NCBI GenBank assembly: GCA_047495785.1
Contig: JBLDXI010000009.1
Span: forward strand, 4,650,001-4,714,000
Reading direction: 5' to 3'
DNA: 64,000 nt
Source: Lepidodermella squamata
Lineage: Eukaryota > Animalia > Gastrotricha
In this document: piece by piece, positions 8,175 through 59,944 of the stretch
Layout: every line of letters begins with the position of its first letter
Position numbering within the stretch: position 1 is the first letter of the stretch
The notes under the pieces: model-generated
The model's input: the letters and a program-made list of their open reading frames with translations, nothing else
Database searches by the model: none
Told to the model about the DNA's origin: nothing
Translations under genes and position numbers: made by a program

Positions 8175-8519
8175 AAACTCGTGATTACCTCAAGCATTTA
8201 TAAGCAGATTCCATTTAACAGATAATTCATCTTTATCCACATTTTTAATCAAACAAAATTGCACTTATACTTATCGATTCCATCATCCTTTATTTTGACA
8301 CTTTTTCTTATTATTTATTATTTGTTTTATGGAAAGAAATAAATTGTCTTGATGTTAGGAAATGACACGCTTTTCCCATGTGAGAATGCAGTCGGCAATT
8401 GTAATCGGATATCTCAGTGTGAAAATCTACAGCTATCTAGTGTCATATATGGGTGGTATACTGAAAAGAGAGCGCTAAACGATATTCGTTGGAGCTTGTT
8501 AACGCGTGTCCCGAAAGAA

Positions 8520-29876: not shown

Positions 29877-30647
29877 TTGAAATATGCTCATAAGAATATT
29901 GATTCACTCGTTTACAGTAAAAGGCTCGCGATTCGCCCTCACTGGGCCCCATTTTCTCATAGTTATTAAGCAAACATGCCTAAGCCAATAAATTGAATGC
30001 GAATCAAGATTTAGCCGGTATTAAGGCTCGCGGGAAAAATGGTGATTGCAACACAGGATATCGTCAGTTTAAAAGAAATTTCCGGTTTTAAAGGCTTTGC
30101 TTCTGAATCGCAGCAATATACACATTTTTTACAAGCACGAGCGGCCAGTCTCATAATGTTGCTAATCCGATAAATCTAACCGTGCGCGAATTATGACCAA
30201 TAAATGTATACCTACCTACATATCGGGCTGCAATTGATAGGCCGGTGTAAAGTTGTTAAAAACTCGATGCGCGCACATTTTTTTCTCGCCACGAGAGCCG
30301 CTCGCAGCTTGGCGACACAAGTCGCAGGTGTTTATTATATATATGCGCTGTGTCTACTCGCTTTCATTGACACCTAGCAACCGCACTACGGCTATACTTC
30401 AATGCGTTATAACCTATAGCCAGGCCTTGAGAGCAAAAAAAGACGAAAGATTTTTCTTAAATTGATTTATACTCCTAGACCCTGTTGAAGCATTTCCGGA
30501 AAACCAGGTCCCTTCAATTTTTTACACCCCCTTATGGCCAGTTTTTTCCTCAGTCAACCTATGTACTAAATCTCGGTGCTTATTATTTTTTCGATAAATT
30601 AAAAAATGGGATTACGCCTGCCTAGAATTTTCACCTTCAGCCGCGAT

Positions 30648-32675
30648 ATGTCGCTATCGCAGCTTGGAGAGAACACACCAGTCCCGCCGACATATCGGGA
30701 ATCAGCCATTGACTGGGGCCGGGGTGACCGGCTCCAGGTCAATTCGCAGAAAATCGATAGACAGCCTTCTTTCTACTATGGATCTCAACCTATGGCGTCG
30801 GAAATGTACGATGTGACAAATCTGAGAAAATCAGGCGTTCGGCTTAACGACCAGTTGTTACCAAAGCCAACGGAATTCCCGGTCGGCAACCTCCAGCCTA
30901 ATTACCGAATACCATCAGAACACCCGTACGCATCTCACATAGAAAGAACGGCAATGTTTCCAGACCCAGCTAGTACTTTAGTAAGATCTCACACCCTACC
31001 TAATTTTTTCGATCAATACCGTGAACGGTCTGCGCAAATCAAAGGCGAAGATCCAGCAGCGCCGTATCAAGTTTCTGAGGTCGACAAAATTCGTGGACAT
31101 CCATGGCGCAGAGAAGTCGTACATTCCGCAGTCGGGGCGTCAGAATTAAAGCCGCAACAGTTCGCAGACCCCTATGCCAGTAATTTCAGCGTTAATAGAA
31201 TCGCCCAGCAGCAGAGTGTTGTCTACCCAACCCCGCCGAATTATCAAAACCCGAATTCTCCGATGGAACGGGATCAAAATCTATCCTTGTCGCCTAGGAC
31301 AGCTAATGCGGCTCTAAATCAATATCGGGGCGATCGTTTGACCCATAACTCGATTCAGTACACTGGAAACGGTCCTGCTGATCCGTTACCAATCGATTCC
31401 CCTATCACACCCCCTCAGCCTCAATCTTCAAACGCCTTCATTCCTCCTCGGCCGCTAGCAGGCCGATCTGTTACGGTCGGCCCAGCGTCGAGATCTCGGC
31501 CTATTTACTGCCGAGCCGCGAACAACGAAGAGTTTTGCACGTGTTGGTACTGCTGCGAGGAGAGAGCGGCGAGGGAACGGCGGTTTAATGTTCAACAGAT
31601 GGAGGCTGAGAACCGGCTGCACGTCCTGGATTCGCAAACCCCGGCGAACAATATTATGGAACTGCGGCGGAAGTATGCTGCCGCCGGTGTGCCGAAATAC
31701 GGCTACAGCCCACGTTCCGAGTACTTGCCGCAAATTTTCTACAACCATATGGGTGAGTTATCGATTTATTCGGAATTTCAAATAAAGAAATTTCGAAGAA
31801 TGTTTACAGAAAGGAAGAACTCTTAAGATTGTAGCATAATTTTAAAATGAAATTAAAATGAGCTGATATAAAAAATGGAAAATCAATGGAAGCTTTCCCG
31901 TTTGTGTAGAATGTCCCCAAAGCGCAGGATTTCAAATTTGAAATTATTTTAGGCCTTTTAGGACCCCGACTTATGACTCTTTATTATAGGAACTTACCTC
32001 GCTGAACGATCTGGCCTCTACAGGCCATCGACGTATTCGATCGACGCTGAAGAGAACTACGGAGCGCTCTACCAGCAATTCCCAATTCAATTTTATGTGA
32101 AGCCTGGGGATCAACAGCCATCTGCCGCTGATAATCCGTACTTAAAGCAAGGCCAGTTCATCCAAGACGGGAAGCGAACCCACAATGATACCGAATATGG
32201 AGCGGCCTACAACACCCAAACCTTCTTACAAGAGAATGCTCTAGAGCTCTCTGCGAGAAATGACGCGACCTCTCTCATGTCCTCACGGAATGAAGATTTG
32301 AGACGAGTTGCGGTGAATTCCAGTGTCCCACTAGCGCCTGATCCAACTAATCCGTTGGACAGGCGAGGCTTCAATAACCCGGTTAATAATGCTTATCTAG
32401 GCGGCGCTATAGGAGGCGCCTCGACACAGCCAGCGTGTTGGCGCCCGCTTTGCGGCGTACCATGGCCGCATTTCAACATGGCTGTCTATCAAAACTCGTT
32501 CAATCGATCGGCGATTCATTCCGAGTTTCACGCCCGGTTTCCGGAACGCGCGCCAGATCTTAGGGAGAACGTTTCCAGTGGTAAGCGGCACGATTTCGAA
32601 TGGTTTCAACGCTCAAGAACTGCGCGGCTCGGCAACGCCCCGGATTCCGCAGCCGCAGCTTCTTGTTTAGACTGA
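30648..32675 (+). CDS. SPMIP4: C7orf31/SPMIP4-like sperm/ciliary microtubule inner protein
   Basis: Exons 30648-31752 and 31990-32675 (phase 1, in frame). Collinear motifs match my recollection of human C7orf31: YDVTNLRKSGVRLNDQLLPKP, EHPYASHIERTAMFP, KIRGHPWR, YTGNGPADPLPID, FIPPRPLAGR, C-terminal PDLRENVSSGKRH. Start could be 30606. Confidence 0.75.
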
Positions 32676-34488: not shown

Positions 34489-35832
34489 ATGTTCGTTCAA
34501 ATTTTTATCATTTTTATCAGCTTAAACCCAGCTTCCGGTCAAGAAATCACCTACAAACCAGCAAATGAAAAGCCTGTGGAAGACATTTTCTGTGAATTTT
34601 TGGCGCAAAACTGCCCATATTTAACCAGCAAGCGCGCCATGCCATTTCTCCCGAATCAAAGTGAACCAAATCGGGTGAATGTCATAGTCAATTTTGTGTT
34701 TGTCAAGCTGATATCTCTTGATGATTTGTCCCAAGTGTAAGAAAGCCAGTTTCATCAACAACTGTTTTTTTTTATCGACGATTATTCAGGCTCGCGTTGC
34801 AAGCTGATGTGAGGATTAAATGGCAGCTTCCACCGTGCGCTGTTTGGAAAGGGGTCACCGATTTCGGCAACCAAACTTTGAATCATTTAGTGAAGCGGTA
34901 TAATTCGCTCCATTTACAACAATGTTCATATCCCAAGGAATCAATGTACCATCCGCTAATTCTGCACATGAACAGTGTTTCTGACACTTACTATATTGAA
35001 AGGTCTGTTTCGGTATTTTCCCTGACACTTCCGTGACGATCTTAGGTAACAGATTCGGAAATGACGAAATTCAGGTGTTCTATGATGGCGAGGCTCAGCT
35101 CATGTTCAAAAACCGGCTGGACTCATTCTGCTCATTTGAGTATAAAAACATTGAAGTTTCATTTTTTCGGTTGAACGCTGATTTTATATTTACAGTTTCA
35201 CGCTGTTTCCCTTTGACATACAAATCTGCTCAGTAGAACTGGCAGCTTTCGACGAACGGCTGAATGTGACGCTCGTCAGTTCGAAGTTTCTTGGTTTCAC
35301 CGACTTCGTAGATCCTGCTGATGTGTGGCTGCATACCTACACAGATTGCTATCCTTCATATGAGGACCCTGTCTTCTCTAAAGCTGTTTGCAAGTTGACT
35401 TTTCACCGAAAGCCAATGTATCAAGTTTTAGTTGTGATAGTACCAATGGTATTACTTGTCATTCTCATTCTATCAACTTTCCTACTGCCGATAAAATTAC
35501 CCGATCGAGCCGACTTTGCTATCACTGTATATTTAGGCCTTAACGTGTCACTAAGTTCTTGCATCAGTAGCTTACCCAAAACCTCGGAGCCTGTCTATTT
35601 TGTTTATTACATCGCTTTTCTGTTGTGCATAAGCACTTTTGTGACTATTTACATGCTGTTGTCGTGTAATTTAGCTCGAAAGAAGAGATACTGCCATTCA
35701 ATATGTGGCATTATGGGATGGGTCCTCCGAAAAATCGACCTAATGGACTCGGTTTGCTTCGCCCTATCAACATCTTGTGCGTTAATCGCAAGCATCGTGT
35801 TTTTCTCAGCTGTTTTACCTTCAAAGGTTTAA
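34489..35832 (+). CDS. Cys-loop channel subunit, family B, copy B1
   Basis: Exons 34489-34736, 34790-35002, 35053-35139, 35196-35832 (three phase-2 introns). Signal peptide, LDDLSQ, spliced Cys-loop CSFDFTLFPFDIQIC, RKPMY, LPIKLPDR, LPKTSEP, four TMs. Confidence 0.9.
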
Positions 35833-38000: not shown

Positions 38001-39376
38001 ATGAGTAAAATGACACTTCTAAGCATTGTGATGCTGAGCCTGATAGCGCAGGCTTTACCGCAAAATGCTTCAAAGGTTTATATGCGTGAATCTCATCCCA
38101 ACGCTCCCGAGGACGTGCTGTGCAATTTCCTCGCGAAAAACTGCCCATATTTACGAAGCCCTCGAGCAGTGCCTCTCAAACGAGGCCGGACGGAAAAGCT
38201 CGATGTCAAAATCCGGTTTGCCTTGGACAAATTTCTCGGCATTGATGATCTGACGCAAATGTAAGTTTAATTAAACCATGAAGCTGAGTTTCGAACTTCT
38301 TCGAGGTTTTAGCTTTTCTGTCCAAGTCGATTTCATGACAATGTGGCAACTGCCGGAATGCGCAGCTTTCTCCGGAGTCACAGATTTCAGAGATCAAACG
38401 CTCGATAATCTCAAACGGAGCGGAGCTCTTCATAACATCAATTATTGCGAATATCGAAAGGAAGAGATCTACCACCCGCTGCTGTTGCACATCAATAGCG
38501 CTTATGACACTTACAGCCTAGAAAAGTGAACTATTAACTATTATTGCAATCTAAAACAATATCAATCTTGTTCTGCTACAGGTCTGGCAACAAATGGATT
38601 ATGGTCGATTCTGAAGGTGGGGCCTTGATGCTTAACAAGAATAGAGTGGACTCCACGTGCTCCTTCGAGTATGTTCATTTCCCGTTCTTGAAATTGTTAT
38701 CAAATCATCGACTTCTGTGAACTTTCCCTTCGATTTTTTGCTCTTCAGCTTTTCAAAGTTTCCATTCGACATTCAAACCTGTAAAATAATACTCGCTATC
38801 TTCAGCTACACGGCAAACGTATCCTACGCGCATAACGTCTACATAAACGAGAACACTTTCATGGATGATTCTGACATATGGAAGCTGAATGACGTCATCT
38901 GTCGAGCGGACTACTCCGATGCAGTTTTCGGCCAAGCCATTTGCACCTTCGTTCTGCAACGAAAAGCAGCCCATCATGTGATTACAATACTTTTGCCGAC
39001 TCTGATTCTTGTAACTATGGTCCTTGCCACGTTTGTTATGCCAGTCGAATACCCGGACAGGGCCTCATTTGCTATAACAGTTTACCTAGCTTTAAGTGTC
39101 TCTCAGTCCTCTTTTGTTGCAACTATCCCTAAAACGTCCCAAGTTGTCTATCTCGTGTACTACATTGGCTGTCTGACTGTAGTTACAATGCTTGTGACAA
39201 TTTACATGCTGGTAGCAAGTAGATTAGCCACTTTTTCCAAGTTTAGATCAACCGCGTTCTACGTTGGTAAAGTCAAAGTTAAGAATATTGCTACTTTGGA
39301 TATGCTTGCATTTTCTGTTTCAGTTACTCTTACACTGCTTCTCAGTGTCATTTTTATGCTCTTCATTACTACATAG
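38001..39376 (+). CDS. Cys-loop channel subunit, family B, copy B2
   Basis: Exons 38001-38260, 38313-38525, 38582-38668, 38749-39376, same intron positions as B1. Cys-loop CSFDFSKFPFDIQTC; MPVEYPDRASF. Confidence 0.9.
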
Positions 39377-39779: not shown

Positions 39780-41131
39780 GTTTTGAGAGGCGAATAGATT
39801 CGTGGGAAATATTCAGTAACTGTTGCAATCCCATCAAAAGCTAAGAAAATAGCTTAGAGAGCCGAATGTATTAAAATCCAAAGCAAAACAAAAAATCTGC
39901 CACGTTTCCCCAACTTTGCCCTCTTTTCTTTAATCCTCATCGAGTTTTCGATCGATATGTAGAACGCCGAAATCGCTAGACAACAGCCTATGGCCATCAT
40001 TACACCCAAGGCGCCACAATTTGAAGCTACGGCCAGGCTCATGGTGACAGGGAGAGCGAACATTGAGCAAACAACAAACTTGACCCAATCAGAATCAGAT
40101 AACATTCGAACTCAACTTTTCGAGGTTAACAACCACAACCTCGTCTTTGAATGGTTTTCCATCTGGAGTTAGAAACTTAGGCCCACCATTAATATCTATA
40201 ATGCTTCTATCGATGTTTCGAAAGAAATGCTTACAGTTCTGAGCGAGCTGTTAACCAACTGTTGCTGGGTGAAAATTGTCGGGGCGAAACCTTTTGTGTT
40301 CAACCCAGTAGTTGGGTCTATTTGATACTCCTCTCTGCTTTTGAAGGTTATCTTCGCGATCGAGAGAATTGTGATGTTCTGCCGCGGGAAGTATTCGAAG
40401 ATCAAATTGTCCACTGTATTGAAGAAAGCGTTGTCTTCTGAGATGGAGCGATACGTCTCCAGCCGTTCCGTTTCATTAAGTGCGCCATAGCCCATAGCCA
40501 TGAAACCTTCGAGGCGGTGGACTATCAATGGAAAGACATTGCTGAATTGTTTCTCTTTGATCTGAGTCACCTTCTGCAGAGAATTAGTAACCTGTGAATA
40601 CACAAATATAACTATACTCGCTCAAGGTCTAAGGACGTATTTACCCCGACGTAATTGAAGTATTTTATTATCTCAGCCTCAACTAGTTGTCCCTTTGTTG
40701 GGCAATCTCCGATCATTATAATGGACAACTGGTCCATAGACTGATCGCCATCTCTCAATTTTGACGCTGTCTCCTTTATTGCTGTGGATTCATCACACTG
40801 TACAAGGATGAATTAAAGATTTCATTATGTATTCTAGGCAACATACCCTGTCATCCATGAGTTCAACCCCTATGTCGTAGTTAGGTAGCCAGTTTTTCTG
40901 GCTACTTAACTGGTCAAGGGCAAGCTCGATTGCTTTCGAGCAGACTGGGCCAGCTGGTACCCCAGTGCCACCGTAATTGATCGGCGCAATTATGTTGTGC
41001 TTCATTCGACTTGACACTTGGAAAGCTCTTGCTTCAGATCGTACAATAGGTTCCATACTCGCGTTCAGGAAAACAGCAGATTGAACTGGCAGAGTAAAAT
41101 AGGCAAGAAGAGTAACAATGTAGCTCAGCAT
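39780..41131 (-). pseudogene. Internally deleted and frameshifted GABA-B-like class C GPCR paralog
   Basis: Signal peptide and flytrap start (AIELALDQL..WLPNYDIGVELMDDR|CD), then a jump from FSNVFPL to late-flytrap GALNETER. A pre-TM1-like piece (PKFLTPDGKPFKDE) ends in TGA, followed by hydrophobic fragments in other frames with stops. Confidence 0.6.
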
Positions 41132-42072
41132 AATAAGAGAAGCTTCTAGGTTGCAATCAAAGATCAAAGATCTATAATCTTCAAATATCAGTTGAAGATC
41201 CCAGAATTATAAACTTTGTTAGCTGCAAGATGAAAAACGAGAGATGACGTGCCTATTGCGAGGTTTTATATAGGCAGCAAGGAAGTTTCTAGAGAGTACA
41301 GGGTTTTTCGCAGAAAAAGTAAGGATCGTCTCAAAAAACAAAAAACGCTAATGTAAGCTTCACTCTTCACTTCCTGAACCATAAAAGGCACAAAACGTGA
41401 CTTCGAAACGCAGACAATGACTCAAACTTGATGCCAAACCTATTGGAAGCTTTTATTCATCTACTTTCGGCTTGGATTCATTATTAGGGACAATGCCATA
41501 GTGGTAGTAGTGCTACGAATACGTTTCGCAGCGATTTATTCCATGATCGAGTTCTAATCAAATCATGTACTTATTCGCCAACTTCTTTCCAGGATTAATA
41601 TTCCTTGAATAAAACAAGATCGTTTGATTTCTATAGACTTTGAATTTTTGGATTTTCACCGACATATTTCCCTGCTCCTTAGCTTATTTAAACGAAGCGC
41701 GTTTATATTCTGCCAGGCGAGAGAAATGTGAAAGTAAGTTTGGCCTGTTGAAACGAATCCAACAATTCGCAATTACAGTGGTCTATCCAATTGCGAAAAA
41801 CGTGAAACGCCGCACACGCTTTTATTCAATTTATTCGTCAGCAAAGTCATGCAAAGAACAAGAAGGGATGGTAGGGGTCATACTCAGCAATTGGGCGACG
41901 AAAAAAGGCTATCATAATTGAAGGATCATGTAAGCTCGGATCACAGCTGAGTGCCGAAATTACTCCCTGCACCAGTGGATCAGACTTAGTCGAAAGCTGC
42001 AGGAAATGTCTGTTAGAAATCACTGGAACCTTGAGTTTCATAATGCGATTAATAAGTGTGAAGTTTGTCCAT

Positions 42073-45000
42073 TCAATGGTTGGGGTAGGGGTTCAATTGA
42101 CTGCTACCACTTTGTTTCTTCGGACCGTACATTCCACGCACTGTTCCGAACGGCAAGCTGCCAGGCTGCTTCTTACTAAGGAACTGAATACCCAAGATCG
42201 GTATCTGACCGCGAGGTTTCTGTATTGGATAGTCCGCTCGTTGCTTTTCGATAGGAGTGTCCTTTTTATTAACAGGCTTGCCCTTGAAAAAAACGTCAGG
42301 AGTAGCCGGTTTCTTCGATAATCGGAGCCGCGAAGCATGCAATTTCATGTCAATCCAATGCATTAGGCAGCGTTCGCGTTTCTCTATTCTTTCATAGGTT
42401 TCATCCGCAACTTTTTTCTCAACGAATCGCGAGAAACGATGGATCGAGAGTTCCACTAGAGTGGAATAAAGTAAAAGAGCAATAAAAATTTGCCAAGGTC
42501 TTACATTTTGCTAGATTGCGTTCTCCAACAGGTTTGAAAATTGACGCGATAATTTCCTTCTTCGCGGGAGTTTTAGTAGCAGTGAATTTCAACTCCTCTG
42601 CCATGTAAGTCGACAGTTCGTGGTCCCATTTGGTGTTTTCTTCAACGTTATCTGCAACCTGGCTGTAGGTGACTGATATAATAGTCATGAAGACCTGAAC
42701 AGCCAAAAACATGACAATAGTTGAGTAAGCCATGCAGAAAAGCATGATATAACGCGAGGTAAAGCTCAGAGACATCAGAGACCCAGTTACTCCGATAATA
42801 TTCTGAACAAGGGTCATAATCGAAGCAGTGAATGATTGAAACTCGTCACAAGTTGTGTTCAGGCTCAGATAACCAAGTTCGGCGAAGAGAACGGTGATTA
42901 GGGCGAAAGCGAAGAGGAACGATGACAGGTCGCCCTTGCCCTTAGAGAGTGTTCCCAAGAAGATACACCAGTACTTATTAAAGGTGAGGTGGCGGAAAAA
43001 CAGCAGCATAGTCATGAAAAAAGTGATTCCGTAGAGATTAGCCATTAAAGCTTCCCAGTTGACGAGAAGATCGAAATTTACGAATGAAGTCCTGTCGGTC
43101 TGGAGTCGAGTAACAGCTTTCATCACAACGAGAATTCGAGCTATGAACAATCCAACAATCGCAAGAGCGATTAGAATCTGACAGAGTTCCAGCAAATTCC
43201 AACCATCCTTTCGGAACTTCGTGAATCCCTGCTTCTTTATTTTAATAAGGATCTTGATCAGATGCGAGAAAACAAGTAAAATCCAGATGCCTTGAATGGC
43301 GAAAATGAAGATCGAACTGGCACCGATGTATTGATACAACTGGAGAGGATACATTCTCGCATGATAAGTCATGCCTCCAGCACTCAAAGCTTCGAACACC
43401 ACTTTCACCGCGATGAACAAGTTGACCTGAGCATTGAAGAGGACCATGTCGACAAACAGGACTGATGTTGCGCTGTCAAGCCATCTTCTCGACTGAAGCC
43501 CAGCAACGAAAGCTTGAGCTTTCACAAGATTCACGGGCAGGTCGACGTAATATCCACCACTGGTGTAGGTTGCTTGCCAGCCCGAGTAGGGAATTCCACT
43601 GTCTTCTCGATGGATCCAAGGGGCCTGCTCGGTCGTGACATTCTCTGGAACCCAGGCAACAGCATCAGTGTTAAAAGTCCAATTGAAGTTCGAGAACTGC
43701 CGTGCTTCGGTGTCCGCGCCCACTCCAAGTTGGCCAACGTATTGATTCTGGCACTTAGTAGTATTGACGACAAGCAGATCAGTGAATTTCTTGACGTATT
43801 GAGGGACCACCGAAGTCTCTAACAAACAGGGGGCTGAAATAAGGTATCATTAAATTGAGGTCATTTGAAATGAAGCTAGATTACCTGAGCGGACTCGTTG
43901 TTGCCTCAAGCGAACGGGCCCGAGAACTACAACATCGTGATTAAGAACCTGATAGATGTTCTTCGCGTTGAATCTCAAGCCCTTGCTTAACTGGTTAGCA
44001 GTGAAAAACTGCGGTAGAAGGTTGTTGTTTAGCCACGAATAAATTTGGCTGTAGTCATTAACCACGCTCATCTGGGCTACGTTAGGCATTTCTATCAATG
44101 GCTTCAAATCTCCAATTTGTTGATACGCCAGCCTGTTCTGCGTTGCAGCGATCACAATAGCAAATGCAACGACGTAAATGATGTGGTGGAAAATTCCGCC
44201 GATGATGTTCCGCATGCGCTTGAAGAGCTCCGTTTTCTTAGTGGAGCTGTTCTTCGAGAATGCCATCTTGCCAATGTCGAGGCCGTCGTCAGGCAGAGAC
44301 AACAGAGTTGAACTGCAGACGGAGAGCAATGCGACTTTGACTGTTTGGATGAGAACCATGTCCTGAACAACGCTCATGACCATTCCACTGAGCCACTGCA
44401 ACGATTTCTCTTTGCCCCACATCAGGCTGTACATGACGATGAAGAAGGACGAGGCTCCAACACAACCAGCGACCACTGGAAGTTAAATAAATTCAAAAAT
44501 GGAAGCAATAAGTTGATCAACTTACAAATCCATGCGATGATAGCGCAATAGTACGGGAGCTGGATTGGCTTCTTTTCTACAGCGCCGCAATCTCTTCGCT
44601 GGTATCCCAAGGCCACATTGAAAATAGTTGTGTATTGGCTATTTTCAGCTGATCGGCGGCGAATTCGCTTGAAAATAAAGGCCATTATTGCAGTTGGAGG
44701 GATGACGATAACGCATCCGATGAAGCTTGTGTAGACTGTAAACCACGACAGGCGGAAGAATCCTCCGATATTGACGCCAACTCGGGGTGATTTACTCTCT
44801 TTCCCGTAGAACATAGCATTAACCAGCATGGCCATGAAGAGGGCGCTGACGACACAAGCCAGCCGTTCGCATCTGGTCCAGTTACTTGGAAGAGGACGCC
44901 TCGTGATGGATAACCATGGATGAGAGCTGAACAAACCAACTCGAGAATGAACGCTGACCAAGTACTTGAAGCCTTTGATCTCGTCTTCCGTTGCGAGTTC

Positions 45001-48000
45001 TTTAAAGTTCATATCACCGCTTTTCATCAGAGACTTGATCAAGAAAACGAACTTCTGCCCCTTCTCAATGTCGACAATGACAACTTTATCTATCTGTACC
45101 TGAAGCGGTTTGCTGCCGTGGGGCGCTCTATATCGGCTGTGGAGTCTAATTTCGATTGCCTCGATATGACCGATAGGCAGAGTTGTGGTCATCATAAAAT
45201 TAGCCGGTCGTCTCCCATCGAAATTTGAATCTCTCTCGCAATCTTCAAGGACGCGCCAGTTCGTATCGCTGATATCACCATAAGCTCGTAGCAGAACTAC
45301 GGGCTTCAAATGATGGTTTTTGACGCCAAAGTGATCGACGGAAACGAGATATTTGCGCGTCTGGTACGGCTTGTTGCTTTTTAGTGGCATAAATGCCCAT
45401 TCCTTGATGTCAAGCTTGTCAAATCGCCAAACGACTATCGCTCCGATGATGAAGAACACTACGGCAGCAACTTGAAACCCGAGAACGAAAGCGTTGTCCG
45501 ATACAAGCGCAGCGAAATTAGCGAATATATCAGAGAATTCGATGGTGTTAGGTGAGATCACAAGATCTGCTCCGAAATCGCCAAAGTAAGATGATTTGAA
45601 AGTAACCGCAGATTCAGTCGAACTGGGATCAAGCTCGAAATCCTCATCTGAGCTCGTTGCATCGCGTCTTTTCCTTGAATTAGTGTTTCTTGCCTTGGCA
45701 AATCCCACTTTGAGATGGTAACCGTAACATCGTTGCAATTCGCAAGAATCGGCTGGCAAGTCGTCCATAGTTGAGAAGCTGGAGAAGTCTTTCTTCGTAT
45801 AAACATGCATCTTGAATGAGACATTTGCGCTTGAAGAGAGTCCTTGCATTTCAACGAAATCTAGCAATGCCGCCTGCGGAATTACAACTCTCAATTCGAC
45901 ATCAGTATTGTAGCTTGACTTGAGTTCTCCAAGACTGGCATTAACACTTGTGTTGACACTGGTTTGAGTGACAAATAGAGACCAGGTATAGCTCTGGACC
46001 GTTGGAGTGCTATTCAACGACAGATACGCAGTATAGTTGTAATGGATGACAGGAAATATCAGCACAAAATCGCCAGAATTCGAAGAAACAGGGAAAATGG
46101 CTAGTGATCCCATTGTATCAGCATTTTTACTAACGTCGCATGTAATCTTGCTTACGTCACACTGAGCGTCAGACTTTTGTATGGTTAGCATAGCTGCTCG
46201 GGAAACAATCGGTTTTCCAGTAATTTTAGTCTGATAGCCTTTCTTGAGAACTAGCTCTTTCTTCTGATACAGAACTTTGACCGAAATAGTCGGCATATTA
46301 AAAGGCTGCTTTGGGTCGAGAACATTGACGATATAGGCCGTAACAACAACGGTTACGGTGTCAGATTCTTTAATTGAGACTCCTGAGGCTTTGGAATCGA
46401 TAAATTCTGTGGCCGATGTCGTATTAGGAAAAACTACGGCCGCGTGAATGGTCTCCAGTTTGAAATTGGGCAGCTTTTTGGCAGCTATTACGCTTAAAGC
46501 TACCGAGAAGAATTTGCCACTGAATGTGAAGTTTTTCCCCGTTTTCGCATTAGCTTCGACCATTTTCAGCATGACGTCAATCATGTCATTGAAATTTTGG
46601 TAAAGTTTTGATGACTGCAAAAATGACAGTATTATGGCTAAATAGAGATTGTACTGAACGATTTTCACGTGCCTCATCTGTTGATAATGCAGCTTTAGGG
46701 CTGGGTGTCGTTGTCGCGGTTGGATCTGTATTGCATTTGGAGTTTTTATCATTGAGGTTAAGCGATAATGGGTTGCTCGTTTCTTCGGTTGTAGTGACTG
46801 ATTCAGACACTGCGAACATGACGGAACTTGCTGCTGTAGCGTATGCTCCTGTGATATTTGCTACAACTTCCGGGGCCATCTGACTCGCCAGTTCAGCATA
46901 TTTCGCCATTATAGGGCCCAAGTCTGCGATGAATGCTGTAGAAGACACAGCTAGAGCTGTGGTATTCTCTGAGGAGCTGATGCGCATTGCAGCCTCAACA
47001 GCTAAAGCACTGAATGGAGTGGCTGCTACTATCAAAGTCTGGGATGGCATTGATGCTATGAAAGAGATCGAAACGGCAGTTGCCGAAGCTGTTTCGTTCC
47101 TCTTCTCCGAGCAGTCTTTGCCGGTCCAACTTCCAGTACAGATGCAAACGTTAGGCTGTGCACAAATGCCTCCATTTTTACACTCCCCGATGTTGGAACA
47201 GGATGCTATCTCGCAAAGATCATTTTTCTTATTTATGTTAGATAAGATCAAACTTACGTAGAGCGCACCTAGTTCCATTCCAACCAGATGCACAACTGCA
47301 TATGTTGATACCGATGCATGAGCCTCCATTGTAGCAAGATCCTAGGCTTGAACAATCAACATTTGGAATTTCACATCGCGTTCCGCGCCATTTGCTAGGG
47401 CATGTGCAGTTATTAGGCGCTGAACAAGTGCCGTTGTTCAAACAGCCACCAATCGATGAACAGTTCGCTAATCAATAAGAGCATAATTCAAATGGAAAAC
47501 TGATTTAGGACAACTAGGAATCCCAGAATCCCCCTCCTCAAGTCAACACACGCTTTCCCATTCGATGGAAAATAAATAGGTAAAATCCCATTTTCCAATT
47601 ATTTCCGGTCAAAACAAAATACAGCTATACCGAACTAACCGGTTGTGCAATCCAGCCCCGTCCAGCCTGGTGCGCATGTACAAATGTTCGGCTCTGTGCA
47701 AGTGCCACCATTGGCGCAGTTTCCAACAGCAGAACAGTCCACTATGAATTGATGGTATAGGATGAAAGGTTTTAAAAAAAATATGAAAGTTACAAGTGTC
47801 GCATGTGGGATCCTTCCAGCCAGATGTGCAGTTGCACGTATTCGGGGCGACACATGTGCCACCATTCGAGCAAAGGCCTGTTGTAGCCGAGCAGCTAGCT
47901 GTGAAATCAATTGCATGAAATATGAATTAGGAATCAATACAGATCAATCGCATTCTTACGAGTGCCACAGTCTACATCGCGCCATCCTGCTGTGCAATTG

Positions 48001-51000
48001 CATACGTCAGGGCTACTACATGTTGCTCCATTTTTGCAACCCCCAACGCCATCGCAGATAGCTGGAAACCCATTCAGTTTTTCTAATATAATTTCGACAA
48101 TCATACTTACGGGTTGAGCAGTCAGACCCTGACCAGCCAGCATCGCATTTGCAGCTGCCAGGCTGGTCGCAAAATCCGTGCGAGCTACAGTTGGACAGCG
48201 CCGAGCAATCAGCTAGGTGAAACATAGTCTTAGCAATTCAGATTCATATTGGGATGGCGAAAACTTGCCAATGGAGCAATTCGCGCCAATCCAATCATTA
48301 AAACACTCGCATGTGTTCGGTAAGTAACAATGGCCATTGTTTTGACAACCACCGATAGGAGAGCAATCAGCTGAGGACAATCTTGGCTATATCACGATTT
48401 TTCACGCGTATATTTCATTGAACTTACGGATGCAATCGCCGACGTTTCCTTCCCACTGCTTTGAGCTCGCGCAAGTCAAGGTTGCGTATTCTAGGCCAGT
48501 ATCATGGAAAACATAGCCCGGCGTGTCGCAACGATATTCCCAAACAATGCCTCGTATGTTTCGCAGCTCAGGCACTACTGTTGTAAAGTTATTGGTGGTG
48601 TTCGGGAAAACTGGAGGATCAGTACAACGACTAGAGGTGCAACTATGCACGGCACCAGTTACAGAGCCATTAGGAGTGCAAATTTTCGTGAGATTTCCCG
48701 AATTTAGCTCGAAATTATCATCGCATTCGTATGTGATGGTAAATGTTCCGCCATTGTTTGTAACAGTGGCGATATGCGAATTCGACCCGGTGGTATCTGG
48801 CAGCAAGCCGCATATCCCGCGGCAGTCAATTGGATCACCCATCCAAAAATTTGTGGTCGAATTGCATGTTAGTACAGACCAGTCTTGATCAGTCAGTGTA
48901 TTTTTGTAGTACGGATAGTTTTTGCACGTGTAATTTACTGACATGACAGTTGGCATTCCAATTATCTCAATCAAAGTGTTTGCCACACCTGGTGGTGGTC
49001 CGCAGTCGGCCGAGACGTGGCTAAGAAGCTCATTGCGATAGTAAGTATCCGCCACGCTGTTGACAGTTCCTTCGCCAAACCTGCAGATAGAGTTTCTTAA
49101 GCTGCAAGACTTGACGCGGCGATTGTATACGAAAAGATTGCAGACAAATGTATTATATGTCGTGCATTTAGTCATGCAAAGCTCTGGGCTGGAGATGCTA
49201 TTCAGATTGATGGATGCTCCACCACTGGTGCATTCGTAGTTTTGAGCCTTAATGAACTTCCCCCTCGGCACGATTCGGCGTATCTTCATCTCAGTGCGAA
49301 CTAGAGGCGTCGTAGTTTGCCAATATATGTTCATGAATCCTTGAGCTTGGGCGCCATACGGATTATTTAAATTGCTTTGAACCGCAGTTTGATTGCACGG
49401 CGAAGCGAGCCACCAACCACCCATGCTACAAGAATCCACAATGAAAGGATTATCTTTGAGAGGGCCTAGTGAATCTGCCATGGTTGAATCAGCGCTGTAA
49501 CCTGCAATACCTAGTCTGCTAGTAGCTCCTGAGAGATAGAAGTTGCTATACAGTGCATAGCCCCACGTGTTTGCCGTTCCGACTTGAACCAGCAGCTCGT
49601 AGTCTCCAGCCTGTGTCATGGCTCTGATGTTGGCGTTACCTAGCCAATAGTTAGCTAATGGATCGCCAAATCCGGCTTCATAAGCAGCCAAGTCTTGCGC
49701 AAAAGTCTGATTGCCATCTACACGCCGTTGGATCACCGTCCAGCCACCGCCCATCGTATTCTGATCGCAATACGCCGCGAAACTGCCCACTGTTGTCTCA
49801 TTCAGCGTGAATACGCCCGATTCACTGGGAAACCCCATGGCTGAGTTGTAATCCTGGATAGAACTGCAATCGTATGGCAATGGTCGAGCTAAATGATAGA
49901 TTTGAAGTCTAATGCGTCTAAGCTCGTAGAGGTGATCAACTTACGATTGCACGACAGTGGACTGCCGGAATATACCCAAGGGCCCACAATTTGCACCCTC
50001 TCTTCGCTGCCATTCACTGGGTAGTACTTTCTGTTGCATTCGTGCCTCACCATCCCGTACTCAGCGGAATTCAAATTTATCGTTGTAGCATTGGGAACGT
50101 TCTTAATGTTAGCTAAATAATGGTAGTTGTAGCATAATTTGAAGACATATTATCTATGAGCTCTTACGATATTTTTTCCGTTGAATTAACATTTTGATTG
50201 ATTTCACAGCCAAAGCGCCCCATTTTAAAGTCGCATTAACACCGCTCGAAGACATTTTGTTATTCAAATTAGAATCGAAGCTACAATCGCTTGGAAACCA
50301 CCAGCCTCCTGTGAATCCGTAAGGAGTAAAACACGAGGATGCTGGGCCGTGATCTGACGTCGAAAATTGCTGATAGTTATGCTTGGCTGACAGCATATCA
50401 CCAGCAGTGCCTTGGTAATTACTGACGAATAGCCTGTAACCATCCTCCTCGTTTCCCACTTGGAAATCGCCGTAAAATGCCCGCAGCTCTGTATTGTCTT
50501 GCAAGATAATTATGATTGCCAACTGATAGGCACTATCTTTGGTCAATTTGTACAGGATCTCGTTGCCTGTGAATACTTTGTTCACTCTATTCAGAAAGTT
50601 ATCAATAACTTACCGATCCAAAAATCCTTCGTAAGTGCGAATTGCTGAGCAGTAAATCCATTCTTGTAGTCCAGCCAGTTCCTGTTGAAGGATGTCGTAT
50701 TGAAATACTGCTGCTGGATAACCTAAGAAACATCATTGGATAATTAAATGATTAGATTCAGATTCAAGATTGCCCATGTAAAATTTATAGAAGGAGTGAT
50801 GAGTGATCCCTCAAAATTTCAAAAATTTGTTTTGCCTAAGACAGTCAAAAAAGAGGTAGCCTTGATTCATATAAACTTACGATCCATCCTGTCCATCCTG
50901 TGACGTAGTTAAGTGGATCACAGACAACCTGTAGAGGCCCTACCGACCGATGAAAAATCCAAAATACATTGCTGATATTGGGATTGCCGAAAAATATCTC

Positions 51001-54000
51001 CACGCAGTCCGATTCTTTGGGGCTCGCTAATACAATTCAGCTATTCAGAATGTTAATTGCGTTTAGTAAAGTATTACTGGATCTTATCATCATAAGACTT
51101 GAGGCTAGGGATGTGTTTCTGCCCTTCCAGGTGCTCCAGAATAGCCCCCTCTCCCATGAGTTTGCGCCTACAATTCCATTCATGTTAGCATCAGAGCAAT
51201 CAGGATTGACTGAGTCCGCGTTTGTTGGCACTTTGAACCACCACGCGCCTGGTCGTTTCGTAGCACATGTGCGACCTTTAGGTTGATCGTATGCCTGGAA
51301 TGGTTGGTTATTCGAAGTCGCCATGGAATCACCCTGATCATCCCCATTCATCGCGGAAATTGATAGCGTGTAGTTGGTTGTGTCCAACAGTGAAAATCCT
51401 GTATAAACTGCCGATCGCTGGTCCCCTGTAGAGTCTTCCAAAACAATGATTAGCATATAGTTCAGGCTAGTAACAGCCGCATTTGTGAGTTGATAGATGA
51501 TCGAGTTGCCGATGTAATGCGAGCCATTGGGGTTTCCGAACCCAGCTTCGTAGTCAGCCCATGTTTTATTGAAGTCCAATCCATCATTTTTGTTGCGTTG
51601 AATCACAGTAAAGCCACCACTGTGGGCTACCATTTCACAGAAAACAGATACTGGCCCAGAAGATCCAATCGGATGAATTTGGTATACACCGCTCGGGGCG
51701 TGAGCATTGCTTGCAAGAATGTCATCGCAATCTAATGGCTTTGGGTTACCTTGCGCTGAAAGCCGCGCGATAAGATGTAGAAAACCAAACTAAGTGACAT
51801 GAAGCTAAACTAACTCGGTAAGGCGTCCTGTGGTTTGTTCCTTCGAATCATCATTTTCGTCTTCGTCATGCCAACGTATTCGCTTTTGAACGTATTGTAA
51901 ATTGGCATTTGCCCCAATGCAGTCGCGCCGTATAATCTAATTAATAATGATCATAATTGTTTTCATGAAATCTGACATCCCCACACCTACTTACCCATTA
52001 AAGTTGACAGACTGGCAAGATTTATACCTGCAAAATATGGATACGCCGATTATCAATTGAAAACTTGATGGCAGTGCGCGAAGAAGGATTCTCGAACTAA
52101 GGCTATTTTTGGGCAAAGATATATGACCGAAGGTTCTCCTGTGGTTTTTGGGGGGTTTTACACCTTGGCCTTGAAACTCGGGGTTTCACTACCTCGGTAC
52201 TTCGCTCACTGCATGATGGTGCGAAATCTCTCAAAATCAACAATGATGAAAGCGGAAAAAATGGAGAAGGACTAGATCAGAATATGAAGACCCAAAATGG
52301 GTACTTAAAGGGTCAAGACTTACCACCAGGCACCTTTGAATGTAACTGAGCAGTTACCCCAGATCGAATAGTCCTGATCATATGTACTAAAGGCGTTATC
52401 AAAGTGGTACGTCATTGCATCTCCTGTCGAAAGAGATTAGGAAAAGAGAGGCATAGCAAATTCTCTACTATGCTTTTAACAAACCAGCGTTTCCACCCAA
52501 ATAGCCACCAGATCTGAGTCTGTATTTATCAGTTTCATCTTCAACGTAGAAGTCCCTATACATAGCGGCGCCATGACTGTCATCAGGTGCCACCATATAA
52601 AGTCCAAGGACGCTATTGTAGTTCAGCGCAGTCAATCGGCGAATGTTATCGTTTCCCAGCCAGAAATTTGTGCTAATGTTCCCAAAACCAGCTTTATAAT
52701 CAGCCCAACCACGGTAAAAATTTGTTGAGCCATCGATGCGCTTCTGGAATACAGTCCAGCCGCCTCCGATACTTGTCATGTCGCAATAAACTTGCATTGA
52801 TGGAAATGAAGGGGGATAGATCGTGTAAACCCCATCGGGTGATGTCCGGTCTCGCATCAGGATATCCTCGCAATCCACGGGTGGCATGTTCCATATGTCT
52901 AAATTGGATATAGCTTGATGAATTTTTATATTTTAAACCATTTGATTCTCACCGCAGTTTGAACCGTAACTGCTCTTGTAGCCAACAGGGCACGTGCAGG
53001 TTGACGCACATTGTCCTATGCCCGACGTGACGCAACCAGTGTGAGGAAGGCATATCCAAATTTTAACAGTCATGGCAAAATTGATGCTCGTGTAATTCTT
53101 TGGCCACAAGTGCAGTCCTGAAGTGCGGATATTCGGGCATAGTCTGGATGTGACAGAACTGGCACCGTTGTACCCAGGAAATAGCTAAAGAAGCAGCATT
53201 GGAATTACGACAATCACCCGAAAGTTTATGCTAACCTTCAAAGGTGACGACCAGTCATTCTGATCAGTTAAGACGGGATAGTAGAAGTTGCCTAGCCTAG
53301 CCTGCTTCACGTAGAAGGAAATTGCGTAGGAAGTAACATAGCCCGCATAAAGGGTTCCTTTCCCAACTTCGATTGTGGATACCGTGAACTCGTATGGCAA
53401 ATTTACAGTCAAAAATAGCCTGTTGTCGGGGTTCACCGGAGCCCAGCCAAGTGGCGTTACAGCATAAGAGCCGTTACCGGTCGACCCAACGAGGCCACAC
53501 CACGACATTGCTGTCAGTTCTATCTTGTCACATCCTACCGAAAGGCTGGTATAACCTCGCCTGTGCTAGGAAATCAGGTTACTTACGGGAAGAAACTGAA
53601 AAAATTAGGTTGCTATATGAATCAAATTTGCTATTGAAAGTCTAATCGGGGTACCTGTTTCGCAGTATCTGCCGCTAACTCCGAACGGACAGCTGCATTG
53701 AGTCACCCAGCCCACAATGATGCAAGTACCGCCATTTGAACACCACGGATAATCAACGCCGTTCGAAGAGCATATGCTCGTTCCTTTGTGTTCCTCGTCT
53801 AATTTTACATCGCTTCCCCGTCAAATGTAGCCTACCTGTCAATGAGCAAGCTGGCCCAGTATAAGGAGCAACACAGTAGCATAGCCCATTCGTACACGTT
53901 CCACCGTTTGCGCACTCTGAGTTTTGTGTACAAACTGCATTAGAAAAATAATCGGCTAAATTCGTTTCAATATCATTTGTTGACTTCTCACGTTTCGAGG

Positions 54001-56146
54001 TTTGCGTGTCACAAATAGCTCCCATCCAAGTAGGCGCACACGAACAACTGTCAGGCGCCGAACATGTGCCACCATTTTGACACGGTGTATGGCAAACGGC
54101 TATTTGTTAGCAATATCAATACCATGCTATAAACTACTAAAATCTGAAAAGAGATTACGAGTGGTGCAGTTGGATCCCTGCCATTGTCCGGTACAAGAAC
54201 AAGTAGAAGGCCCTGTGCAAGTTCCCCCATTCGAGCATCCTCCAGGGCACGTGAAGGTACCACAAGTTGGACCTGTCCAACCGGTGGGGCATGAACAGGT
54301 GTTTGGGGCCACGCAGGTGCCTCCATTTTGGCAAGGAGACGAGCATATTGCTAAAAATGACACAATTTGTCTCAAAATTAACTCCATTTTCGCCTTTTCT
54401 CACGAGTAGTGCATCGAGTTCCCGTCCAGCTCGCGGTGCAGTTGCAGTTCAACTGGGCATTACAGGTTCCACCATTGGAGCATGCAGGCGAGCAGACAGG
54501 AGTGGCACAAGTTGGACCCGTCCAACCCACAGGGCAGGAACAGTTGTTTGGGGCCACGCAGGTGCCTCCATTCTGGCAAGGAGACGAGCATACAGCTGAA
54601 AAATGAAGCCATTGGCCCAAAAATTAACCACAGTTTTCGCCTTTTCTCACGAGTAGTGCATCGAGTTCCCGTCCAGCTCGCTGTGCAGTTGCATGTTAAC
54701 TGGGCATTACAGGTTCCACCATTGGAGCATACAGGCGAGCAGACAGGAGTGGCACAAGTTGGACCCGTCCAACCCACAGGGCAGGAACAGTTGTTTGGGG
54801 CCACGCAGGTGCCTCCATTCTGGCAAGGAGACGAGCATACAGCTGAAAAATGAAGCCATTGGCCCAAAAATTAACCACAGTTTTCGCCTTTTCTCACGAG
54901 TAGTGCATCGAGTTCCCGTCCAGCTCGCGGTGCAGTTGCAGTTCAACTGGGCATTACAGGTTCCACCATTGGAGCATACAGGCGAGCAGACAGGAGTGGC
55001 ACAAGTTGGACCCGTCCAACCCACAGGGCAGGAACAGTTGTTTGGGGCCACGCAGGTGCCTCCATTCTGGCAAGGAGACGAGCATATAGCTGAAAAAAGT
55101 AAAAGTCTCAAAATTGACTCCATTTTTTGGATTTTCCTACGAGTCGTGCATCGTGAACCCGTCCAGTTCGCTGTGCAGTTGCATGTTAACTGGGCGTTAC
55201 AGGTTCCACCATTGGAGCATGCAGGCGAGCAGACAGGAGTGGCACAAGTTGGACCAGTCCAATTTGCTGGACATGAGCACGTGTTCGGCGCCGTGCAGCT
55301 CCCGCCATTCAAGCACGGACTCGAACAAACGGCTGATAAACAAGCCACAATATTATATTTTACAACGCTCACACTGTAAAGGAGGTGGGTTACGAGGACG
55401 TAACAAATATCGAAAAGGGTAACGTTGAAAATTTAAAAATCTACCCAGTGCAGGCTCATTATTGCACCAAAACTCCGCTCACGATCGCTCAGAACTTTAA
55501 CGAAACCATTCTGGTGATTTCAGCTTTAAGTTACCTGATGTACACGCTGACCCAGTCCATCCTGCAGTGCAGTTGCATGTTAACTGTGAAGTGCAGGTAC
55601 CATTGTTTTGGCAGGGTGTCGAACAATTGTCTGTGATAATGAGTAATAACGAAAAATCTGAGTGTGGAATGCTGAGCTAACATAACTCGCAGAAGCGCCC
55701 AGTGTAAGTAGGAGGGCAACGGCATGAAGCGCCGTTACTACTTGGTGAGCAGGTTCCACCGTTTTTACATTCGGGAAGGTTGACAGTATTTGGCTCGCAA
55801 AATGGCCCGTCTGCATGATGCCTTGATAAAATTAAAATTAAAACGAAAACTTTCACTAACTATTAAGCGAGCAGTCAGAGTTTCCCCACGGCACGGGGCA
55901 ATGACATAATCGCGCGTCTGGCGCCATGGCGCCGGGGCCGGGTCTCCTCGTGGTGGTTGTCCCCGGCCCAGGTTGCGTCATGGCGAACATACACTTTCCC
56001 CCATTTCTGCAATCACTATCAGAAGCGCACGACGGAGGACACACGGCTCCTGCGAAAGCAAAAAAAGTTATCCAAGTGATTTTTTTCTATAAATTACCAG
56101 GAGGTCCAGCGGCGAGCAATATCAAAGTTACGCACAGAATATACAT
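42073..56146 (-). CDS. Giant polycystin-1-like (PKD1L) protein: signal peptide, ~25 EGF, F5/8-C, four fibrinogen-C, PAN, four Sushi, degenerate GAIN, TM1, PLAT, polycystin channel region; roughly 3,900 aa (estimate)
   Basis: About 30 exons from [14 protein letters not shown] (56146) to TGA (42073); every junction I checked keeps frame (not all were checked). FReD motifs [22 protein letters not shown] signatures PNTIEF before TM1, [54 protein letters not shown]. Confidence 0.85.
52072..52211. mobile_element. 140-bp hAT-like MITE inside a polycystin intron
   Basis: Ends CAGTGCGCGAAG and CTTCGCTCACTG (11/12 inverted match); flanks CTTGATGG and CATGATGG (7/8, consistent with an 8-bp TSD). Confidence 0.7.
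54387..55333 (-). repeat. Tandem exon+intron repeat, four units, period 247/247/~243 bp, each encoding two EGF domains
   Basis: CGCCTTTTCTCACGAGTAGTGCATCG recurs at 54391, 54638 and 54885; two introns are identical; a fourth, more diverged unit at ~55139-55333. Confidence 0.95.
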
Positions 56147-58367: not shown

Positions 58368-59944
58368 ATGTATCTGCCTCTTTTATTTGTTTCTCATTTT
58401 TTCATATCTGGCTCGATGTTGGGCACTGATTTGACCTACCGGCCGTCGCAAGAAGTACCTACGGAAGACGTTTTGTGCGAATTCTTGTCCCGAAACTGTC
58501 CGTATCTTACCAGTAAACGCGCCCTGCCATTCCTCCCGAACCAAATAGAGCCGAAACGGGTGAATGTTCAAATTTCATTCGTCTTTGTCAAACTTCTATC
58601 CCTGGACGACTTGTCACAAACGTTTGGGCCTTGAATTGCTTTGTTTATTGTTTAGTTCATTTGCGAATTTATTTCTATGTCCAGGCTGTCTTTACAAGTT
58701 GATCTGCGAACATCGTGGCAGCTCCCTAGATGTGCGGTTTGGGCTGGTTTGAAAGATTTTGGCAATTTAACGCTGAACAGTGTCATGGGGCGCGATAGGT
58801 CGGGCAATCTTCAACAGTGCTTGTATCCGAAGAAATCCATGTTCCACCCACTCATTCTGCACATGAACAGTGTGTCGGACACCTACTACATTGAAATGTT
58901 AGAGTATGCTATTAATCACTTAATGAAACTGCTATTGACACAATGTGGGATAGCCTTTAGATACTACGAACTGATCCGAAGCTTCAGTTATTTTTCGGTA
59001 TTAATCCAATTTTAATTGAAATACTGGTTTTTAATCTATGGTTTAACATTCTTCTGCCCTTGGACCTTAGACATTCTGGAAACTTCCCTCACGGGTTCTC
59101 TAAGTTATATTATCGATGTCACGCATGTTACAGATACTATATAGTGCAGAAAAATGTTGTATTCTACAGATCTGGAAACGAAGATATTCAAGTCAACTCT
59201 ACTGGCACAGCAATGATGATCAACAAAAATCGGTTAGACTGCTCCTGTTCTTTCGAGTAAGCCCTTACTGCATTTTCCCATAAATAAGCCTAATATTGCA
59301 TCATATGTTATAGCTTCACGCTTTTTCCTTTCGATTTACAAGTCTGCTCTATCCAGCTATCAGCTTTCAACGAATTGCTTAATATAACGAGGGTAGAAGG
59401 CAGATTCCTAAACTTCACCAATTTCGTTGACTCTTCCGATGTGTGGCTGCTAAGAGGCTCAAATTGCTACCCGTCTTATGAGGACAATATTTTCTCCGAA
59501 GCAGTATGCGAGTTGACATTCCAACGAAAAGCTATGTACCACGTTCTTGTTATAATAATGCCGATGATCCTGCTAGTCATCCTGATTCTAGCCACCTTCT
59601 TAATGCCTGTAAAATTTCCCGATAGAGCAAACTTCGCCATCACCGTCTATCTAGCACTTAGCGTGTCTCTTAGCTCCTGCATCAGCAGCTTACCTAAAAC
59701 TTCAGAACCAGTCTATGTCGTCTATTACATCGGCGCCTTGCTGTGTATCAGCACTTGTGTGACTATCTACATGCTGCTGTCGTGCAATCTGGCTCGTAGG
59801 AAGAGCTACAACCAGTCGATATGCGGAATCGGCGGGTTGATCTTCTGTAAAATCGATTTGATAGATATGACCTGTTTCGCTTTGTCAACCGCTTCCGTCT
59901 TCATTGCAAGCGTGGTGTTCTTTAATGCCGTGGTTCCTGAATAA
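58368..59944 (+). CDS. Cys-loop channel subunit, family B, copy B3
   Basis: Exons 58368-58621, 58685-58897, 59170-59256, 59314-59944, same intron positions as B1/B2. Cys-loop CSFDFTLFPFDLQVC; MPVKFPDRANF; closest to B1. Confidence 0.9.

Follow-up and report, generated by a model that had tools for sequence, protein, structure and literature searches.

A predicted polycystin-1-family gene of the gastrotrich Lepidodermella squamata with four fibrinogen-related domains and 25 EGF repeats in its ectodomain

Polycystin-1-family (PKD1-family) proteins are generally regarded as the subunits that do the sensing in polycystin channels, and few of their natural ligands have been established. A locus of the gastrotrich Lepidodermella squamata raises the question of what such a subunit might respond to when its extracellular arm consists of binding modules that have been studied in depth (fibrinogen-related, PAN, Sushi and EGF) and, no less, whether arm and channel belong to one gene at all. 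The locus lies in a window of 64,000 nucleotides (nt) on contig JBLDXI010000009.1 of assembly GCA_047495785.1 (positions 4,650,001 to 4,714,000, forward strand), where an earlier reading of the letters and open reading frames (ORFs), here called the original prediction, had placed a polycystin-1-like channel with four fibrinogen-related domains (FReDs), a discoidin domain and about 25 EGF repeats. We consider it likely that the locus is a single intact gene encoding a 3,861-residue polycystin-1-family member of the PKD1L2/REJ type, and extend the same confidence to the mechanism and the history of cassette capture proposed for it below. Such an FReD-bearing PKD1L gene would widen the known diversity of the family, with no new principle established.

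The gene reads from an ATG at 56146, followed by a hydrophobic signal-like segment recognized by sequence reading and hydropathy and then by a 48-nt phase-1 intron, to a stop codon at 42073-42075; the original prediction had marked exactly these boundaries and had likewise read a signal peptide. All long ORFs at 42-56 kb lie on the minus strand. The coding sequence is a continuous 11.6 kb with consensus splice sites, and its 34 introns (33 GT-AG and one GC-AG) have a median length of 54.5 nt and a maximum of 296 nt, with 28 of the 34 in phase 1; the source genome is compact, with introns of ~50 nt. The junctions of exons 32/33 and 33/34 align without gaps to the intronless relative P0001, the core junctions in general are collinear with that protein, and the C-terminal tail, which contains a charged, helical-looking segment, is similar to its helical tail. 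The model was derived with a Viterbi exon/intron parser, followed by retraining of the splice-site weights and curation by hand. The parser drops small EGF exons when the intron penalty is high and cuts false introns into long exons when it is low; it is also blind to GC donors, and was corrected by hand at the GC-AG intron (48268-48213, minus strand, 56 nt, after EGF exon 25), where a GT-only parser loses that exon. Two other gene ends were discarded, namely the first in-frame stop at 42419 in the Viterbi model, replaced once a 49-nt consensus intron had added the last exon, and an extension to 41831 in one model, which is spurious.

The membrane-bound half of the protein places it in its family. 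Hydropathy gives 11 transmembrane (TM) segments (TM1, TM2-TM5 and S1-S6), Pfam recognizes both the polycystin and the PKD_channel domains (Table 1), and the channel half matches Protein Data Bank (PDB) structures of PKD2L1 and PKD2 (E 1e-43 to 1e-40), PKD1L3 (3e-25) and PC1 (1e-10). The PLAT domain gives no Pfam match on the window sequence itself; the AlphaFold2 (AF2) model of TM1-PLAT (pLDDT 89.3) is matched by Foldseek to the PLAT domains of lipases and lipoxygenases (probability 1.0, root-mean-square deviation ~2.4 A), and 54 of 60 aligned homologous segments match Pfam PLAT (PF01477). An exhaustive search with the exon encoding stalk, TM1 and PLAT returned 1008 matches, the closest of which are metagenome proteins (35-48% identity) and the closest named ones PKD1L2-type proteins of Lingula, scallop, Ptychodera, Branchiostoma and Schmidtea. 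REJ (PF02010), PKD repeat (PF00801) and LRR modules find no Pfam match on any piece, but REJ and PKD repeats are not universal in the family: human PKD1L3 has no REJ and is nevertheless counted among its members (PMC1934368). As judged from these comparisons, the predicted protein is a member of the polycystin-1 family and of its PKD1L2/REJ group; the original prediction was thus right about the polycystin-1-like identity, the PLAT domain, the channel region and the absence of REJ, PKD and LRR modules. In a HMMER alignment to 5z1w, 7d7e and 6du8, the filter position (42779-42805) carries IGV opposite the LGD of PKD2L1. Since the filter has no acidic residue, the protein probably cannot conduct alone, and it would probably need a PKD2-like partner; heteromers of PKD1-type and PKD2-type subunits have been solved (entries 6a70 and 7d7e).

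The extracellular arm follows largely the order given in the original prediction, with two departures. Its EGF repeats number 25 (16 + 1 + 8), in line with the earlier estimate, as judged from Pfam matches and from cysteine counts of 97, 6 and 48, and its four FReDs are recovered as four Pfam PF00147 matches (E 8.7e-16 to 6e-40). The predicted PAN domain and three Sushi domains that follow are borderline in the window; a collinear segment of a relative (P0190/L005) scores above the Pfam cut-offs for both (PAN 23.0 bits, Sushi 41 bits), and both assignments are retained. The first departure is the module of ~143 residues between EGF repeats 16 and 17, which had been called an F5/8-C discoidin domain: neither of its exons matches Pfam at E<=10, phmmer finds no match to the F5/8C domains of an amphioxus relative (P0085), whose copies are of the NedA/fucolectin-like type, and the best PDB match, a CBM35 jelly-roll, is non-significant (E 0.23), so that the module is described here only as beta-rich. 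The second is the lone Sushi placed between FReD3 and FReD4, a stretch of 55 residues with 2 Cys and no Pfam match at E<=10, which is treated as a linker. Within the N-terminal EGF array, exons 6-8, each encoding a double EGF, are 97-99% identical to one another, and the three near-identical copies differ from an older copy by 16-18 synonymous and 9-11 non-synonymous codon differences, with all Cys retained; from these comparisons, the double-EGF array is a product of recent exon-plus-intron duplication. The FReDs share only 29-38% pairwise identity and are therefore old.

What the FReDs bind allows more than one reading. The FReDs of ficolins, TL5A, FIBCD1 and FREPs are glycan binders, and the TL5A and ficolin structures have a D-x-D calcium site and an acetyl pocket with a His after the second pocket Cys and aromatic residues. 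The original prediction envisaged a lectin-like ciliary receptor that would couple recognition of microbes, symbionts or gametes to ion flux; spelled out, the four FReDs would recognize glycans, acetylated or not, on such partners and thereby gate a polycystin channel in the cilium. Consistent with it, ficolin, TL5A and FIBCD1 are among the PDB matches, and FReD1 retains the D-x-D motif with its flanking Cys pair; lectin modules are, moreover, common on PKD1-family ectodomains and implicated in egg-jelly recognition (PMC1934368). However, the PDB FReD matches (E 1e-20 to 1e-30) include the protein-binding FReDs of angiopoietins, tenascins and MFAP4 about equally well: the best matches of FReD2 are ANGPTL6, MFAP4 and angiopoietin-2, and FReD4 matches angiopoietin-2, tenascin-R and ficolins. 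Three of the four FReDs have no calcium motif, motif comparison finds the pocket His in none of the four, and the calcium/ligand loop is deleted in FReD4, so that glycan binding is possible for FReD1 at most; the ciliary location is conjectural. As a reading of all four FReDs, the glycan receptor is therefore doubtful, and of the lectin-like character first proposed, what stands is the presence of lectin FReDs among the matches and the calcium motif of FReD1. Judging from the structural matches and the motifs, a role in binding proteins or in mechanical tethering is no less likely than glycan binding.

PKD1-like cores as a rule carry an arm of lectin type; an FReD arm is rare, with precedent. 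Among the 150 best representatives of the core relatives, only one (P0085) contains an FReD. A second sample, of 120 PKD1-like proteins for which Pfam domains had been precomputed, has PF00147 in two, P0085 and a neighbour 94% identical to it (P0316). In these samples the architecture is thus not common, commonness in invertebrate PKD1L genes being an outcome that the original prediction had named as refuting it. In the same 120 proteins, C-type lectin, SUEL/Gal-lectin, F5/8C, WSC and PAN modules are frequent, and lectin modules on PKD1-family ectodomains are documented for the sea-urchin REJ proteins (PMC1934368). No paper that joins a fibrinogen-related domain to a polycystin or PKD1L protein was found in the searched literature. 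The earlier remark that this architecture seemed undescribed agrees with that result, but it needs qualifying in that the Branchiostoma lanceolatum 'PKD1L3' (CAH1271112.1, P0085) combines an FReD with a PKD core; the set of four FReDs and 25 EGFs has no counterpart among the sampled relatives.

The amphioxus protein and its paralogue or isoform P0316 resemble the window protein in their GPS position, TM1, PLAT and PKD_channel core and in an ectodomain that holds Fibrinogen_C, EGF and other lectin-type modules. They differ in having one FReD rather than four, in adding two F5/8C domains and a C-type lectin, in a canonical GPS (C-x-C-DHLT) and in their length of 1,995-2,232 residues, and their core is ~28% identical to that of the window protein. 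As the nearest relatives of the window protein carry no FReD in the available upstream sequence, the amphioxus and gastrotrich acquisitions look independent. The nearest named cores (29-35% identity) belong to PKD1L2-type proteins of Spiralia and deuterostomes, among them those of Lingula anatina (XP_013397161.1) and Schmidtea mediterranea (AKN21725.1). They share the layout of TM1, PLAT, TM2-5, TOP and channel, and the Lingula and Schmidtea proteins, like the window protein, have no HL^T; PKD1L2-type ectodomains carry REJ, PKD repeats, C-lectin, MAM/LDLa or nothing recognizable, and an FReD in none of those sampled. The nearest relatives to have been characterized are planarian pkd1L genes, whose expression lies in sensory neurons and on which mechanosensation and chemosensation depend (PMC11448475). 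SpREJ1-10 of sea urchin and the vertebrate PKD1L2 and PKD1L3 resemble the window protein in their carbohydrate-recognition modules, sometimes with EGF, and in the GPS-TM1-PLAT core (PMC1934368). Their lectin modules are of the C-type, SUEL or WSC kinds and not FReDs; in most of them REJ occurs together with PKD repeats and a GPS that can be cleaved, and long EGF arrays are absent. The sea-urchin REJ lectin domains have been linked to gamete recognition (PMC1934368).

The closest cores of all are metagenomic (P0001/L001, P0003/L002, P0155/L004 and P0315/L006), with 31-46% identity over ~1,300-1,480 residues. They share with the window protein a clade-specific stalk, a polybasic motif and a degenerate GPS, as well as a GC content of ~40-46% and few or no core introns. 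Their ectodomains are different: those of L001 and L004 combine Sushi and EGF modules with a Thr-rich stretch and with modules that match no domain, and that of L006 is a pure array of at least 14 EGFs, 51% identical to the N-terminal EGFs of the window protein. No FReD precedes any of these cores in the 1.3-3 kb available before the contigs end. Conversely, P0190/L005 contains a collinear series of FReD, linker, FReD, PAN and three Sushi (34% identity over 734 residues, to residues 1272-1965 of the window protein) but ends after one further Sushi. The gene that follows, an ankyrin gene, has the opposite orientation, and the 4.7 kb downstream of this cassette show neither an EGF array nor any similarity to PKD. 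Multi-ankyrin-repeat genes adjoin both the PKD1L core of relatives (L001/L003, 7110-9776) and the L005 cassette (2722-3768).

Between arm and core lies a stalk of ~526 residues that matches nothing in Pfam, GPS included. The AF2 model of its last 375 residues (pLDDT 74.7) has a sole high-probability Foldseek match, the GAIN domain of BAI3 (4dlo; probability 0.99 and 0.94, TM-score ~0.2), and on this modelling the stalk is a likely but tentative GAIN domain. Of its part in exon 32, the first ~315 residues show conservation in the metagenomic clade only; its last ~55, the linker after the GPS, are conserved across PKD1L2-type proteins. At the position that aligns with the C-x-C-DHLT of P0085, the window protein has neither the GPS Cys pair nor the HL^T triad; Lingula P0007 (~360-380) and Schmidtea PKD1L-2 P0018 (~690-710) are also without both, and the loss therefore does not exclude membership of the PKD1 family. 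A polybasic R-x-K/R-R motif, which fits the proprotein-convertase consensus, stands ~35 residues upstream of the degenerate GPS. It is present in all ten members of an alignment (A1; 29-48% identity, including P0001-P0004, P0079 and P0315) in a loop that is otherwise variable, and its conservation is consistent with the possibility that convertase cleavage may replace GAIN autoproteolysis. The separation of N- and C-terminal fragments is considered important for polycystin-1 signalling, and a furin-type site that is conserved where the GPS triad has been lost points to a possible alternative route to that split.

The same region decides whether the locus might instead be two genes, one for a secreted protein of EGF, FReD, PAN and Sushi modules and the other for a shorter PKD1L protein, with a continuity that is only apparent. 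That reading could appeal to the FReD-PAN-Sushi cassette that is apparently a stand-alone gene in one relative, to the relatives' cores, which metagenome gene callers give as separate proteins, and to the fact that the locus was read from genomic sequence alone. However, in exon 31 (47205-46655) the last EGF continues without interruption into the stalk's helical head, so that the link between ectodomain and stalk needs no splicing assumption. The two frames concerned, one for the ectodomain (46589-47341) and one for the PKD part (44425-46860), overlap and are connected by a 40-nt phase-0 intron (46654-46615). P0001 and L004, in which the stalk region is homologous and uninterrupted, run in one ORF straight across the position that corresponds to the 46654/46614 junction, their cores being preceded on the same strand by Sushi and EGF modules, and L006 has its EGFs, of the same type, upstream of the core. 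No start codon with a signal peptide was found in the downstream PKD part, and no gap between exons exceeds 296 nt, too little to accommodate a terminator plus a promoter. In the relatives, the split calls are artefacts at introns, produced by the prokaryote-style gene calling applied to the metagenome assemblies. Two genes are thus very improbable, and the predicted PKD1L locus is a single gene, as the original prediction had read it. Two other joins of exons 31 and 32 were rejected, one through a 184-nt intron whose donor is GTCACT, the other from a GTGAAA donor to the acceptor at 46484; each deletes a stretch that P0001 and L004 conserve. That the locus is decaying or chimeric, either a pseudogene or an assembly artefact fusing unrelated pieces, is the least probable reading, for although tandem EGF exons that are nearly identical are easily mis-assembled, and several domains (PLAT, stalk and two further modules) have diverged beyond the reach of Pfam, the 11.6-kb frame is intact over 35 exons with 3,861 stop-free codons and consensus splice sites, which argues against a pseudogene, synonymous changes are in excess and Cys conserved in the duplicated EGF exons, the PLAT segment is confidently modelled as a PLAT fold, and the core junctions are collinear with those of relatives.

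The gene is thus a real and single one, apparently functional, and the favoured account of one polycystin-1-family protein can be carried on to its possible working. The ectodomain would form an extended, multivalent binding or tethering arm, and the stalk would relay ligand binding or mechanical load on this arm to a cation channel. That channel would be formed with PKD2-like subunits, as in PC1-PKD2 and PKD1L3-PKD2L1, the window protein being the sensing subunit of a TRPP heteromer. With the GPS motif lost, the ectodomain would not be released by GAIN self-cleavage, and the polybasic site just upstream may permit cleavage by a proprotein convertase instead. As for its origin, the FReD-PAN-Sushi cassette probably entered an EGF-array PKD1L gene by phase-1 exon shuffling or gene fusion, because the cassette apparently stands alone in L005, the closest cores carry other arms and phase-1 introns dominate. 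The maintenance of the core while the arm is swapped among paralogues or orthologues offers a natural experiment on the coupling of ectodomain and channel. A wider proposal, in which the PKD1L proteins of this lineage, with a near-constant 11-TM core and stalk and freely exchanged ectodomains (an FReD cassette, EGF arrays, Sushi repeats and modules without a domain match are those encountered so far), make up a repertoire of recognition receptors (immune, allorecognition or gamete) coupled directly to an ion channel, with a convertase acting at the polybasic loop in place of GAIN cleavage, is a long shot.

Several observations weigh against this account of a single sensing subunit. The structure of the gene is known from genomic sequence alone, and at the exon 31/32 junction the donor is weak (GTACAA), with a 5-residue gap relative to P0001, so that the exact donor is uncertain. 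The EGF copy number, given by near-identical exons, could be an assembly artefact. The FReD pocket residues are poorly conserved, the match of the stalk to GAIN comes with low TM-scores, and no gene for a PKD2-like partner was found in the window.

Table 1. Features of the PKD1L-like gene, from N- to C-terminus of the encoded protein, in positions of the window
Feature	Position	Strand	Basis
Whole PKD1L-like gene	42073..56146	-	35 exons, 3,861-residue ORF; curated splice model, no internal stops
Exon 1: start codon and hydrophobic signal-peptide-like segment	56098..56146	-	Sequence reading and hydropathy
EGF repeats 1-16, exons 2-12	53655..56049	-	Pfam EGF, EGF_2, EGF_TEN; 97 Cys in 570 residues
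Five tandem 192-nt double-EGF exons with ~55-nt introns	54159..55332	-	Tandem Repeats Finder: period 247 nt, 4.1 copies, 92% matches
Beta-rich module, ~143 residues, split by a 51-nt intron	53053..53534	-	'Discoidin' of the original prediction
EGF-like repeat 17	52953..53052	-	Six-Cys pattern
FReD1, four exons, D-x-D calcium motif	51815..52898	-	Pfam Fibrinogen_C E 6e-40 (N-terminal half); C-terminal half via three small exons
FReD2, single exon	51078..51755	-	Pfam Fibrinogen_C E 2.8e-38, full length
FReD3, three exons, divergent	50168..51026	-	Pfam Fibrinogen_C E 8.7e-16 (C-terminal half); N-terminal half fits four-copy alignment
55-residue linker exon	49945..50112	-	2 Cys; position kept in L005; lone 'Sushi' of the original prediction
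FReD4, calcium/ligand loop shortened	49275..49888	-	Pfam Fibrinogen_C E 1e-25
PAN/Apple domain	49005..49274	-	Pfam PAN_1 20.7 bits (cut-off 21.4); six Cys
Sushi/CCP, three	48428..49004	-	Pfam Sushi 21.3 bits, 2 stretches, borderline; 12 Cys
EGF repeats 18-25, including GC-AG intron 48268-48213	47108..48370	-	Pfam EGF; 48 Cys
Stalk, ~526 residues: helical head in last-EGF exon, 40-nt intron, then mainly beta GAIN-like part	45490..47107	-	AF2, Foldseek
Polybasic R-x-K/R-R motif (furin-type consensus) in low-confidence loop	45661..45678	-	Alignment A1; loop pLDDT <50
Degenerate GPS position	45562..45603	-	Alignment to canonical GPS of P0085
TM1	45427..45489	-	Hydropathy peak 2.74; helix in AF2 model
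PLAT/LH2 domain, first cytoplasmic loop	45013..45357	-	AF2, Foldseek, Pfam matches of homologues
TM2-TM5	44300..44871	-	Four hydropathy peaks; collinear with PKD1L2-type proteins
S1 (TM6) and polycystin/TOP domain	43328..44206	-	Pfam Polycystin_dom (PF20519) E 2.7e-5 and 8e-21, two exons
S2-S6, TRPP-type channel domain	42668..43327	-	Pfam PKD_channel (PF08016) E 6.7e-22
Last exon: cytoplasmic tail, charged helical segment, stop codon	42073..42455	-	49-nt consensus intron to channel exon

The remainder of the window holds genes of other kinds; Rfam and tRNA scans of the whole window are empty. Just downstream of the PKD1L gene, at 40199-41206 (minus strand), are ORFs that are Pfam-negative, one of them receptor-like of the periplasmic-binding type by eye, and an ORF at 756-2759 (plus strand) resembles class-C G protein-coupled receptors (7tm_3, 27 bits, below cut-off). 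A P5-type cation ATPase gene with very large exons occupies 3668-8171 (plus strand); its identity to any protein scored in a word-indexed search (from fungi and a spider) is only 24-29%, which points to a fast-evolving or unsampled lineage. A Helitron-like element at 22164-27144 (minus strand), with Helitron_like_N (E 1.6e-54) and a PIF1 helicase with a Pif1 2B domain, is spread over three to four frames. Cys-loop ligand-gated channel genes form a tandem cluster on the plus strand (8465-10225, 11019-12248, 14610-16253, 18531-20288 and 28649-29638), mostly as single long ORFs with Neur_chan_LBD and Neur_chan_memb, accompanied by partial copies on the same strand (35182-35829, 38645-39373 and 59294-59941), these extra pieces comprising the transmembrane region only. 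Lastly, an ORF at 30603-31823 (plus strand) is similar to SPMIP4, sperm-associated microtubule inner protein 4 (E 4.7e-23), which places a gene for an axoneme protein ~10 kb from the PKD1L gene.

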